Shown piece after piece: positions 4,087 to 9,475 of a stretch of 64,000 bases of DNA (position 1 is its first letter; every line of letters begins with the position of its first letter). The DNA comes from Setoptus koraiensis (taxonomy: Eukaryota > Animalia > Arthropoda). Below the pieces are notes generated by a model. It was given only the letters and a program-made list of their open reading frames with translations. It ran no database searches and was not told the origin of the DNA. Location of the stretch: the NCBI GenBank assembly GCA_048013815.1, contig CM106585.1, positions 10,726,001 through 10,790,000 of the forward strand, given 5' to 3'. A program made the position numbers and the translations under genes.

Positions 4087-6286
4087 ATGGCTCGCGAACA
4101 ACCAATGGCAAGTATTGAGAGATAATTTTTCAGATTTCACACATATGATTGCAACAAAAACGAAATTCGATCACTAATTGAAAAGTTGCTCAGTACAGAG
4201 ACCTGGCCCAAGTGGATATTCGCACACGGACACCAGCGGAGATCATGGCACAACTCTGGCCGGTTTGGCGAATCATGCCGCGGGGGGCACTTTCAGTTTG
4301 TCTTTTGGCGCACAAGGTGATAGCATCTCCATTAGGGATAATTCAATAAATGGTTGCGATGCAGACAAAGTGCCTACCATCAGCTCAAACAGTCACACGG
4401 ATAGGAAGCCCGTTATTTATGGCAGTACGCAGAACACAAAACATAAGGCACAGCAAAACAAGCCGGGTTCTGGTTTATTTTTTTGTGACAAATATCGCTA
4501 CTTCGTAAGTGCGTTACTGTTGCTCGGAATAACTCTCGTCACCTACTCCAGATCGGTGCTTTATTTGAGTGCCGTCCAAATGATTGCCGACAATGTGCTA
4601 GCCGAAGAGATGGCAAATCGCCGGATGGAAGCGGGCGGCGACGACCAAACAAACAATTTCACTCAGCATCACACGTCCGATGGATCTTGTCCCATTGTCA
4701 GACATCATGAGCCATCGAGGCCAGCCACTGAGGCCACCGATTCAAGGTCAGCAAACATTGATTTAGACAATACGATAGTTATATCGGTGGGCCCGTCCAG
4801 TAAGCGTGTCAATGATTTTTACACCATGGTTAGCACCGATGAAAACAACAATCTCGAGATGTACGAATCGAGCATTCGTGCCAACATTACGAAACGCGTG
4901 GAAAGGGGCGAACTGATCGATTGGAGCCCCAGACAGCAGGGCTTCATATTTGCCGCGAACAGCATCGGCAATTTGTTTATGGCGATACCGTTGAGTAGAT
5001 TTGGCGAAATTTATGGCGCCCACAAGGTGATAATTGCGTCGAGTTTGCTTGCTTTTTTGCAAGCATTCGCGTTTCCGTTTGTGGCCCAAATGAACGTGCC
5101 CACAGTGATTTTATTCGAGCTGTTAACCGGTGGCATCACTCACGGCATGGAAACAGTATGTTACACATTGTTTGCCAGTTGGCTAAGTCCGGCCGAATTG
5201 GCTTTTGCCACCTCCTCATTGATGGCCGCCTATCAATTGGGCAGCTCTTTGGCCAATTTGGCCACGGCCAGAATTCTTTCCATGGGCCTGCACTGGAAAT
5301 GGACCTTTTATACGCCTGGTGTGGTATTGCTGATATTTAATATATTGTGGATAATTTGTGCCGCCAATAGACCAAAAGATTGTCGTTTTGTGAGCGAAAA
5401 CGAGATAAATTTTGTAGCAGACAGCCAGCGAGATAGCCACGATAATAAGCAAGAAAATAATCAAGATCGAGCGACTAGCCAAACCAAGGCAGACCAAACA
5501 AATAAGCGAGCACCGTGGAGATTGTTGTTCACAGACGCAACAGTTTCGGCCTTGATAGTGAGCAAATTTGCCGTTAGATGGTACTTCGGTGTTGCCGGTG
5601 CACTGATGCCAACATTCTTACATAATGTCGTCCACACCGACGTCAATCTAATTGCCAGTATCATGGGCATCAACAATATTATCGGCCTTGTGTTTGGCGT
5701 CATAGTTGGATACAAATTTAAAACGTTGGTGCACACAAGACCGTTCAATTGGTCGCTAACCAGAATGCGCAAATTATTTCAATCGATGGCCCATTTCGGC
5801 ATTGGGGCATCGTTGCTGATAATGACATTATTTGATTGCAATACAAACATTATAATCGGCACGCTGGTTGCCAACACCATTTTGATTGGCTTCATTGTTG
5901 TAGGCGTGCTACAAGTGCCGCTCGATATGTCGCGCGAATATTGTAGTCTCATAACATCCATTTCAAACACATTTGCCATTGGACAGATAATCGGGCCGCC
6001 AGTGTCCGGATTGATACTCGGCATGGGCGCCCAGGATCGGCAAGCCTGGAAATATGTCTGGTGGACAGTGGTTGGCTGGCATGTGATTGGCGGAACGGCC
6101 TTCTGTTTATATGTGGACTCAACTCCTAGGAATTTTGAAAATATCAGCTGCCAATCTACTGCCGATGCCGGCCAAAAACACCAGCAACGACAATCGTACA
6201 ATGCCGAAGCAAGCGAAACTCGATTAAACGTGGACAGTGCCAATCCAATTAAACCGAACAAAAGCTTTGTTATTGAATCGCGATAA
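4087..6286 (+). CDS. MFS transporter, SLC17 (sialin/anion:cation symporter) family; predicted exons 4087-4111 and 4194-6286
   Basis: About 12 hydrophobic segments and SLC17-like motifs (YSRSVLYLSAVQM, WSPRQQGFIFAANSIG, WPWRLL-like APWRLLFTD, W..VW..V). The track ORF starts at a TTG directly after an in-frame TAA. An 82-nt intron at 4112-4193 (gtattg...cactaat branch-like...ctcag) joins ATG4087 in frame. Confidence 0.85.
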
Positions 6287-6718
6287 TCACCTACTGGCAC
6301 AAACGACAATTTTTTGAATTTTGTTTGTGTTTTTCAACCACAAAATGGCCGGCACAAAATCATTGGTCATGAGAGAAATGAAAAAAAAAACAAACAGAAT
6401 GGTGGCTCGCTCGCGGAAAATAACTAAGCAACTACCCGAGCTTTGAAACGGTTGGCTGGTTCTCTCTGTCAAGTCGATAAGAGTTTGTGTGCAATCTCTG
6501 TGACTATCCCGAGGTCACTCGAAAATACTTGTCGCATCAACCATGATTAAACTGCCTATAATATTATGTAATAGCCACACGTAAATAAACAAACCTGATT
6601 TTCAAAGCGATCCATCATTATCTGTTCGCATAATTAGTGTTGCAATGACACAAAATCAATATGTTATCGATATGATAAAATATTGGAGTTCACCCTGTTA
6701 TACAACTTGCGTGTCGTG

Positions 6719-7230
6719 TTGACCATCTTGGTTGCATCAAACTTGAAATACGCTTTCGTCCATTGACCCTTATCATCTTGGCCAACTGATGCTGGTGTCA
6801 TCAACTTGTTGACGTCGTTGCCAGCATCACTAGATTGGCCGACCGTGATGATATCGGCGAGCGATAATGATAATTTAAATAGTTTCGTGACCCTGATTCA
6901 TTCAAGTTTCCAGCTTGTCTTTGGAAATCAATGTAATGGAGGACCATTTTTCAACTGACATCTTGCTACAAAGTGAGTCTTTATTTAGTTGTTGTCAGTT
7001 TAATAGTTGCTCCTAGTGATACCAAAGAATCGGATATTCGCAACCAACAGTTCATGCAACAACAATTACGGCAAATGTTTTCGTGCATGCTTGCACTGCA
7101 ACAGTTTTCGTATCATTGCATCCACTAACAATAAGCATACATGATGGTGGCAAAAACAATCGACCACATATTGTTATCGATACCATACAATACACCGATT
7201 GGCCCCAGCGTGACAATTCATTCAGTTGCT
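6719..7230 (+). pseudogene. Decayed duplicate of the 5' region and first coding exon of the carbonic anhydrase gene (paralogous to about 9100-9620)
   Basis: Colinear similarity, for example ccctgattcattcaagtttc vs ccttgattcattcaagcttc, and VSLHPLT..NRPHIVIDTI vs VSLHSLI..NRPYIVIKTI. The ATG position reads ACG and no downstream CA exons follow. Confidence 0.7.
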
Positions 7231-7266
7231 TACCTGTTCGAAATTGCATGCATTTATAATGCATCG

Positions 7267-7963
7267 TTAACAAGTCGCGGCTCGTTGCATTGTTGCATCC
7301 GGATCAGAGGGGATCTCGGCTTGTGTTGCATCCGGATCAGAGGGGATCTCGGCTTGTGTTGCATCCGGATCAGAGGGGATCTCGGCTGGTGTTGCATCCG
7401 GATCAGAGGGGATCTCGGCTAGTTTATTTGATCGTTTGTAGTTATCGGGCCTATGTGTTTGGCCTGGTGCACACCAACCGAACCAATAGTCCCAAAATCG
7501 GCATGGAATCGGAGCGTCGCCGTTACTGCAACCTATCCAATTGCAGAGGTCCTACATTTGGAAGCGTTAGTAATGTAGTTAGTTTGGTTCGTTAATTGAA
7601 TAAGTTACTTGTAAATAAAGCGCAAAGTCAGGGATGTATCGTTTGCTACTTACTTTTTTGCTCGGATCGGGTTGTTTTTCATCATCATACGGGGATCTAT
7701 CGGGCTGATGGAATTCATCGCAACCACCATGGATTTTGCATCGGGGACTCCTCTGTTAATGAAATCGTATGCGTCGATATTGTTTGCAGTTTAAATAATA
7801 AATGAGTAACTTGTGGACTGAGCGCCACTGGAAGAATATTCACTGATCGACGCAAGCTATCAAAAACAATACTTACATGGCTAGTTAGGGCTTGCGAAGT
7901 AAACATTGCAACAACACAAAATGTTGTCATCAAAAGGATTGCAACACCTCTTCTTGAGTCCAT
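7267..7963 (-). CDS. Predicted small secreted Cys/Trp-rich protein with C-terminal acidic 11-aa repeats; exons 7963-7877, 7752-7654, 7551-7267 (156 aa, or 162 aa from ATG 7981)
   Basis: Two phase-0 GT-AG introns with gtaagt donors join three stop-free exons: MDSRRGVAILLMTTFCVVAMFTSQALTSH / RSPRCKIHGGCDEFHQPDRSPYDDEKQPDPSKK / DLCNWIGCSNGDAPIPCRFWDYWFGWCAPGQTHRPDNYKRSNKL(AEIPSDPDAT[P/Q/Q/M])x4 QRAATC*. The N-terminus is hydrophobic and signal-like. Confidence 0.75.
7291..7420. repeat. 33-bp tandem repeat x4, coding on the - strand (AEIPSDPDATQ)
   Basis: tgttgcatccggatcagaggggatctcggct(tg) starts at 7291, 7324, 7357 and 7390, with no spacers. Confidence 0.95.
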
Positions 7964-9475
7964 TGTATTGTTTTGTCGCATATGATTCTAATCAATTTGT
8001 GGTCCTAATTGTGAGGATGATAGGTAAAGATCATAGATAGATGATTGATTGCTAACATATAATCTACCATCCGGTACTTTGTATCGGTTAAGCACCAATG
8101 CTCAAGAAACTAGATCAATGATACAGTTTTCAAGTTTCTAATGATCATTTACTTTTAGCATGTTTGCCACTACTAGCTAGAGACCAAGACACACAAGTTG
8201 AAATACATCATTTTTCACACTATCCTGTTTCAGCATACAACATGTTTGTTTCTGTTCTTATTATGTTTCAGACAGCTCTTGATTTTTTAAATTGCAATCG
8301 ACGGTGAGCGTCAACTGTTTACCCACCTAGTCAATTGGCATGCCGACAACAAGAATGAATTGGTACCAAGGATGGCTCTTGAAAGAAGTCGAACACTTCT
8401 AGCCGTCTACACATAAACTCGACACGGGAAAATCCGTGAAAACAGTCTACTTTTTTGGTTTTTATGACAGAAAAGATCGGCTTTCAGTGGAAACAATATA
8501 GATAATTTTACGGTTCAGCTTTCGCTCGACAGGGACTGTGTCACCTGGCAAGTCAGCGATTTTCTCGACATTAGCTGCCGAAGGGAGACATTCAGAATTT
8601 TTGATACGAAGTCCTGGTTTTTCTGGTCCTGTAGGGAACGCTGCACGTTATTGCAAAATACTCACTTTTCGTGCAACTTCAATGTAAAACTGCATGAAAA
8701 ATGGTTAGAAGTTGCTCTATCCTCTCTAAAATTCGTATATATTATTTCGACATATCAAACTAACTTCTAGGGACAGCTAGATGACGTTTGCTCATCACAC
8801 ATATCGGTTCGGAAAGATTTCCAATAATTTTCATCTTGGTATTAGGATATCTAAAGAGTATCTGATAAGTCGTGTTCTATTGAGAATTTCGCTATCTTTG
8901 TGTTCACAGTTTTAACAAAAAACAAGTTTTATTTATTTGCTGAATAACTCTGCTTCGATCGAGCTAATAAGCTTGTAAGCTTACAAGTTTATTGTTAGAT
9001 TATTATAAATTGAATCAGCTCTGACTGATCTCAGTTTTAGGAGATTCTCCATATGCACTATTTTTTCCTATCGCAATTCTCTCACTAATTTTTCTTTGGC
9101 TGATCATAGTTGTTTGCTACTGAAAAAACGCTTCCATCCATTGACCAATACCATCTTATCTAACTGATACTACTTCGAGCGACTTGTTGACATCTATGCT
9201 AATACAACTAGATTGTTGAGATTGGCCATTCAATGATGACATCGATAACACAGATAGTTTTTTGACCTTGATTCATTCAAGCTTCGATTCACTCGGGCTT
9301 GTTTCGGGATTCCACTGAAGAGGAGTTCATTTTCCAACTGTTATCTTGCAACAAAGTGAACGACAAAATAAAGGAAATTGAAAATTTCTTTCTAGTTAAG
9401 TTGCTGTCCATTAATCCTTATAGATAGTGAAACCAAGGCATCGGATATTTGCAACAATCAGCTAGTGTAACAATT

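Follow-up and report, generated by a model that had tools for sequence, protein, structure and literature searches.

In the conopeptide and other venom or antimicrobial-peptide gene families, the signal and pro regions are conserved together with the introns, and the exon that encodes the mature peptide is hypervariable. CCAP, the nonapeptide PFCNAFTGC-amide, carries its two cysteines in a C-x5-C spacing. Eriophyoid mites are major plant pests and have the smallest arthropod genomes. For Aculops lycopersici, one of these mites, more than half of the predicted secretome was reported to lack orthologs outside the eriophyoids, and eriophyoid effectors are expected to be species-specific (PMC7738191). 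The chromosome-level genome of the eriophyoid Setoptus koraiensis, from Pinus koraiensis, comprises two chromosomes with an N50 of 24.53 Mb, and its published annotation combined ab initio and homology methods without RNA data (PMC11920263); because no RNA was used, a small orphan gene could plausibly have been missed.

The window considered here is the whole 64,000-nucleotide stretch of DNA that was analysed. A preliminary description made from its letters had guessed at a plant-feeding mite, and the genome is indeed that of S. koraiensis. On the minus strand of the window lies what we judge likely to be a real, transcribed and spliced three-exon eriophyoid gene that encodes a 156-residue secreted precursor and belongs to a three-member, taxon-restricted family produced by module duplication (Table 1). 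The proposed model of three exons and two phase-0 GTAAGT introns agrees with the sequence, in which the proposed frame, and only that frame, is stop-free in all three exons; given the local base composition, 155 codons would all remain open by chance with a probability of about 8e-5. The three Cys-bracketed loops, the KK and KR pairs and the lone C-terminal Cys that had been read from this frame are all present in the exon translations, which were analysed exon by exon. A TACTAAC branch-like site lies 16 nt before the acceptor of intron 2. The ATG at 7963, with A at -3 and G at +4, aligns with the start position of both paralogs described below; an in-frame upstream ATG is found at 7981-7979, 18 nt 5′ of it, with C at -3.

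Table 1. Features of the target gene (positions in the window) and of its two paralogs (positions on contig 1 of the assembly).
Feature	Position	Strand	Description
Conserved upstream 15-mer	8125-8139	minus	AGAAACTTGAAAACT; promoter block, invariant in three-way upstream alignment
5′ UTR, minimum extent	7964-8009	minus	spliced contig starts: X4 8009, X5 7998
Exon 1	7963-7877	minus	29 codons, MDSRRG...LTSH; signal-peptide-like leader; from translation
Intron 1	7876-7753	minus	124 nt, phase 0, GTAAGT..CAG
Exon 2	7752-7654	minus	33 codons; from translation; wholly covered by spliced contigs
RSPR basic site	7752-7741	minus	exon 2, immediately precedes loop 1
Loop 1, CKIHGGC (C-x5-C)	7740-7720	minus	exon 2; followed by acidic spacer
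KK	7659-7654	minus	end of exon 2 acidic spacer, before loop 2
Intron 2	7653-7552	minus	102 nt, phase 0, GTAAGT..TAG
Exon 3	7551-7267	minus	94 codons + TAA; from translation
Loop 2, CNWIGC (C-x4-C)	7545-7528	minus	exon 3
Loop 3, CRFWDYWFGWC (aromatic C-x9-C)	7503-7471	minus	exon 3
KR	7437-7432	minus	exon 3, after loop 3
33-bp tandem array	7291-7420	minus	Tandem Repeats Finder: period 33, 3.9 copies, 98% matches
Last Cys	7272-7270	minus	exon 3, C-terminal, just ahead of TAA
3′ UTR	6969-7266	minus	AATAAA at 6985-6980; X4 contig
Paralog B	9,315,150-9,315,950 (putative gene about 9,315,150-9,315,820)	minus	three exons, hand-read including 3′ end
Paralog C	9,253,600-9,254,560 (putative gene about 9,253,750-9,254,420)	plus	three exons, hand-read including 3′ end

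Contigs of four public runs (X1, X2, X4 and X5) were compared with positions 6300-9000 of the window. Those of X1 and X2 read through the introns and the intergenic DNA, which is the behaviour of genomic DNA. Those of X4 and X5, which come from one study under another organism label and are at least 99% identical to the window, leave the introns and the flanks uncovered within the compared interval. The 124 bases at 7753-7876 are skipped exactly in contigs of both X4 and X5, so that 7877 is joined to 7752, and the 102 bases at 7552-7653 are skipped exactly in an X5 contig, so that 7654 is joined to 7551; in plus-strand reading the skipped stretches are bounded by CT..AC, which corresponds to GT..AG on the minus strand. 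No run containing the locus is recorded as RNA, and the nature of X4 and X5 is deduced from their exon-only, spliced contigs: since introns are skipped exactly and intronic and intergenic DNA is uncovered, both behave like RNA, and we infer that they are transcriptome data. Both junctions predicted beforehand are confirmed in this way, and the gene is transcribed and spliced. The transcript extends on the minus strand from at least 8009 to about 6969, and a colinear X4 contig, 6969-7305, ends 11 nt beyond the AATAAA signal. Within exon 3, RNA-like contigs cover 7550-7510, the array (as 63-mers) and the sequence from 7305 downwards. Their depths are low, about 4-7, and at such depths the lack of any RNA-like contig over 7387-7509, the loop 3 region, proves nothing; loop 3 is accordingly read from the open frame alone.

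The preliminary description had also recognized a hydrophobic leader, and this holds in its charge, core, -3/-1 residues and conservation across the three paralogs. The leader has RR at positions 4-5, then a 16-residue hydrophobic core, GVAILLMTTFCVVAMF, and T-S-Q-A, with a Kyte-Doolittle peak of 2.46 over nine residues; it thereby shows the sequence features of a classical signal peptide, namely a positive n-region, a core of 7-16 residues and small uncharged residues at -3/-1. The product is predicted to enter the secretory pathway, and the signal peptide would be cut after the conserved TSQA. Outside the leader, 23 D+E stand against 13 K+R, which gives a net charge of about -10, and 18 of the 127 residues are proline; because the product is so strongly acidic, it is a poor fit to a classical cationic toxin or antimicrobial peptide. 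An AlphaFold2 model of exon 3 alone had a mean pLDDT of 56 and was uninformative.

The gene had been described as a lone orphan, and this part of the preliminary description does not stand: two paralogs share its leader, its introns and loop 1, and one of them, paralog C, also shares loop 2. The assembly consists of two contigs of 24,221,962 and 24,533,333 bases (48.76 Mb), and the target gene is located at 10.73 Mb on contig 1, 1.4 Mb from paralog B (about 9.315 Mb) and paralog C (about 9.254 Mb) on the same contig. When the genome was searched at the protein level with exons 2 and 3, only the target gene itself was returned. By DNA search, paralog B was found to match the start codon, exon 1, intron 1 and the beginning of exon 2 of the target at 72%, and paralog C was found by a DNA search that started from the paralog B locus; a leader profile and an exon 2 profile each retrieved exactly three loci from the whole genome. 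Weak protein matches on contig 2 (E 0.14) were rejected as relatives, as they fall in a low-complexity region.

The features common to the target, B and C are a promoter block, the leader exon, the homologous phase-0 introns, a basic site and a C-x-I-x-G-G-C loop 1. An upstream alignment of the three genes contains an invariant AGAAACTTGAAAA block, and the 48.8-Mb genome contains the 15-mer pattern listed in Table 1 at three sites only, one upstream of every member of the family, and a control pattern at none. The leader exon has 16 invariant positions out of 29, F-C-V and T-S-Q-A among them. Exon 2 is 33 codons long in both the target and paralog C, and opens with the basic site that precedes loop 1, RSPR in the target and KR in the two other genes; the loop 1 consensus of the three genes is C-[N/K]-I-[Y/H]-G-G-C, of which C, I, G, G and C are invariant. 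Exon 3 opens with L-C-N-Q-W-G-C-N-N-G in C and L-C-N-W-I-G-C-S-N-G in the target, so that the C-x4-C loop 2 is present in these two genes and absent from B. A tail beginning LAKHA is common to B and C and absent from the target, and loop 3 and the repeat array are found in the target alone. The number of Cys pairs is thus one in B, two in C and three in the target. The basic site before loop 1 is the only one kept in all three genes; since paralog C does not retain the KK ahead of loop 2, and the KR lies in a stretch confined to the target, the idea of a precursor for several peptides receives little support from the family. The 3′ UTRs of B and C share a conserved block with AACAG|GTAA, possibly an additional splice site.

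The six introns of the family (two per gene) align with a mean column identity of 70% and contain the conserved blocks CTACAAGTTAC, ATTAAT and AACGC; within paralog B, intron 2 matches intron 1 at 84% over 104 nt (E 9e-24). Loops 1 and 2 each follow such an intron and resemble one another (x-L-C-N-...-G-C). The homology of all six introns implies that the gene grew by duplicating a module of intron plus loop exon, and the simplest account would be a tandem duplication of this module that predates the separation of the three genes. In B and C, introns 1 and 2 of one gene diverge from each other (K 0.20-0.27) to the same extent as each does from its counterpart in the other gene (K 0.19-0.21), which points to either gene conversion or constraint. 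A genome-wide introner or repeat was considered as the source of the intron element and discarded, as the element is present only at the three family loci. A mirtron or a snoRNA host was also rejected because Rfam and RNAalifold, applied to the gene and the conserved introns, gave no Rfam match and no consensus RNA structure. If the modular growth proposed here is correct, the family would be a tidy example of gene growth via intron-exon module duplication in a genome that has otherwise shed introns.

The leader and the last exon differ in their rates of change. Between B and C, the leader has a dN of 0.12 and a dS of 0.39 and looks constrained. The coding DNA of exon 3 is too diverged between the same genes to be aligned by BLAST, and the flanking intron 2 and 3′ UTR remain at 76-82%; nonsynonymous divergence in exon 3 reaches 0.45 per site, as compared with 0.18 in introns (Fisher p 4e-7). 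Exon 3 aligns poorly between B and C, however, and is highly diverged at synonymous sites too (pS 0.69), so that this excess may come from indel turnover or misalignment and need not stem from positive selection; the excess is consistent with fast turnover of the mature part and is no proof of positive selection.

The protein had been said to belong to no recognizable family, and the searches outside the genome bear this out for the Cys/Trp part: Pfam, PDB, a word search, ESM Atlas and the HMMER set gave no relative of it. In Pfam, each exon translation was searched and nothing rose above the cut-off, the nearest being LMP1 at 17.4 bits against a threshold of 26; the word search of 5.8 billion proteins with exon 3 of the target and of paralog C gave no match, ESM Atlas gave no usable match, and the PDB sequence search returned only noise (E 0.89 or worse). 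HMMER against 1.84 billion representatives produced 13 matches, all within residues 32-90 of the exon 3 translation, of which 12 begin at residue 43 or later, in the repeats; the matched proteins are long, unrelated repeat proteins (e.g., with EEVESGPDAT units, or Gram-positive surface proteins). The term lineage-restricted accordingly means that the family is not in the public protein sets searched. On sequence grounds, the target is a member of a new taxon-restricted three-gene family, of a familiar secreted-protein kind.

Four AEIPSDPDAT repeats had been read from the 33-bp array, and both Tandem Repeats Finder and the translation recover them: the array, which is open in several frames, encodes [L/P/Q]AEIPSDPDAT four times, and the first codon is the sole difference among the four units. 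Acidic 11-residue repeat proteins such as those with EEVESGPDAT repeats, Gram-positive surface proteins and, in Pfam, Herpes LMP1 have an equal period and a similarly acidic, Pro-rich unit, but they have unrelated architectures and come from unrelated organisms, and the Cys/Trp part is unmatched in them; the likeness is a convergent low-complexity similarity. The CLE motif of plant peptides has 12 residues with R1, P4, G6, P7, P9 and H11, and cyst-nematode effectors carry such motifs in tandem at the C-terminus. A CLE-type mimic was rejected for the repeats, as the unit AEIPSDPDAT[Q/P] lacks R1, G6, P9 and H11 and has only the I-P-S-x-P-D core in common. At 7319-7386, the collapsed repeat unitig of 62-63 nt is about 6.6-fold deeper than the contigs that flank it in the RNA-like runs X4 and X5, and the corresponding ratio in the DNA run X1 is about 2.7; the array may be longer in the X4/X5 sample, or the cover may be uneven, such depths not being comparable.

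What would emerge is an extracellular protein that is acidic, rich in proline and for the most part unfolded, with three small loops. After removal of the signal peptide, a furin or prohormone-convertase-type enzyme would probably cut at the basic site ahead of loop 1 and so remove a short pro-piece, and each close Cys pair (C-x5-C, C-x4-C and the aromatic C-x9-C) would close its own small disulfide loop. Because the paralogs carry one, two and three Cys pairs, the loops are better regarded as independent, self-closing units than as parts of a knotted framework. The acidic tail of four 11-residue units would have expanded recently, and the spare C-terminal Cys could form an intermolecular bond. 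At the level of the family, the promoter, leader and introns would be kept while the mature C-terminal part diverges fast.

This pattern resembles that of the conopeptide-type families, in which the leader, basic pro-site and introns are likewise kept and the last coding exon is far more diverged; the predicted basic cleavage site of the target also abuts the first Cys, as it does in those families. Unlike conopeptides, however, the family has three genes, an acidic, mostly non-Cys product, local loops and no venom context. The combination of a conserved leader and introns with a rapidly changing mature part is typical of secreted peptides that face the environment, in saliva or as effectors, in defence or in reproduction. 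The lineage-specific proteins of the predicted Aculops lycopersici secretome and the salivary families of Tetranychus urticae (PMC7738191) are likewise short, signal-peptide-bearing, taxon-restricted proteins of plant-feeding mites, in small families for which homologs elsewhere are not detected; the likeness is one of kind rather than of demonstrated sequence relation, and an architecture of Cys loops plus repeats is not described in the consulted text. An orphan secreted protein in an eriophyoid mite is expected rather than surprising, and the target would be a fairly ordinary lineage-specific secreted protein.

If a single guess is to be made, it would be a secreted protein that acts outside the mite, in saliva and at host contact. 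A specific form of this guess, possible but to be held tentatively, is a salivary effector that is injected into pine needle cells, where it would bind a host target through its acidic repeats or its aromatic disulfide loop. The genome of a plant-feeding eriophyoid, a small secreted family that is taxon-restricted and fast-diverging, and the precedent of the lineage-specific A. lycopersici secretome, with its expectation of species-specific effectors (PMC7738191), all favour such a role. The contig depth is nevertheless modest, the consulted sources were not found to document host manipulation by S. koraiensis, a pine-needle mite, and rapid evolution suits other secreted classes equally. Defence, reproductive and extracellular matrix proteins are among the classes that also evolve rapidly. 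The product might instead serve the mite alone and play no part in the host, as an antimicrobial defence protein, a reproductive protein of the spermatophore or egg, or another protein of the extracellular matrix, which is likewise possible but to be held tentatively; the leader, the short disulfide loops, the aromatic loop, the repeat tail and the small fast-evolving family apply equally to such a protein, but the net charge outside the leader is atypical for cationic antimicrobial peptides. It is tempting to speculate that the loops, including the Trp-rich C-x9-C loop, are released by a convertase as a new class of disulfide-cyclised peptides in saliva that act on the conifer host, which we consider unlikely; if true, the module of intron plus loop exon would generate new loops. 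The expressed gene model and the three-gene family provide, in any case, a concrete candidate for saliva and effector work, and other small orphan secreted genes may well be missing from an annotation made without RNA.

It is improbable that the locus is transcribed but non-functional or non-coding, its open frame being fortuitous or that of a decaying duplicate. The lack of a homolog in the public protein sets searched and a repeat that is open in several frames would be compatible with such a locus, but a single frame is open over all three exons against the chance given above, the phase-0 introns preserve that frame, and all three paralogs retain the leader, where dN is lower than dS, and the loop cysteines.

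A precursor of the peptide-hormone or neuropeptide type, in which loop 1 would be a diverged CCAP-type C-x5-C peptide freed at the preceding basic site, was considered as well. The target family shares the C-x5-C spacing with CCAP, and the paralogs, which read KR-TL-C-N-I-Y-G-G-C-G, follow the form KR-xx-C-N-x-aromatic-x-G-C-G, with N4, an aromatic residue at 6, G8 and a following Gly. Against the nine CCAP positions, the paralogs have 4/9 identities plus a conservative F-to-Y change, and the target has 3/9 (Cys, Gly, Cys). The canonical coding pattern of the nonapeptide plus Gly was absent from the genome at up to two mismatches, which means that the gene is lost, split by an intron or more diverged. 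A CCAP precursor was nevertheless rejected as very improbable, because the Gly plus dibasic feature for amidation and release is lacking after the second Cys: the Gly of the paralogs is followed by no dibasic site (C-G-E-D-P-P), CKIHGGC-D of the target is without the Gly (C-D-E-F) and has its cleavage site abutting the Cys, and a conserved hormone gene does not look like a set of three paralogs that diverge fast and carry added loops.

The neighbours of the gene are ordinary animal genes (an MFS transporter, a carbonic anhydrase, a dual-specificity phosphatase and a muniscin), of which the MFS transporter ends at 6286, convergent with the target gene. Just downstream of the MFS transporter ORF, in A-rich sequence at 6380-6387, X1 has an additional A and X2 an additional AAAAAAC. 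The 38 nt at 8452-8489, intergenic and upstream of the target gene, form a small element, dispersed or minisatellite, that recurs in other X1/X2 contigs with five differences and with loose ends that read ATTTCGGTG three times. A long CAG/CTG-type trinucleotide run at 961-1427, with several open frames on both strands (poly-Q, poly-Thr/Ala and poly-Val/Ala), sits between the fragments 153-635 and 1944-2318 of EF-hand, neuronal-calcium-sensor-like exons.
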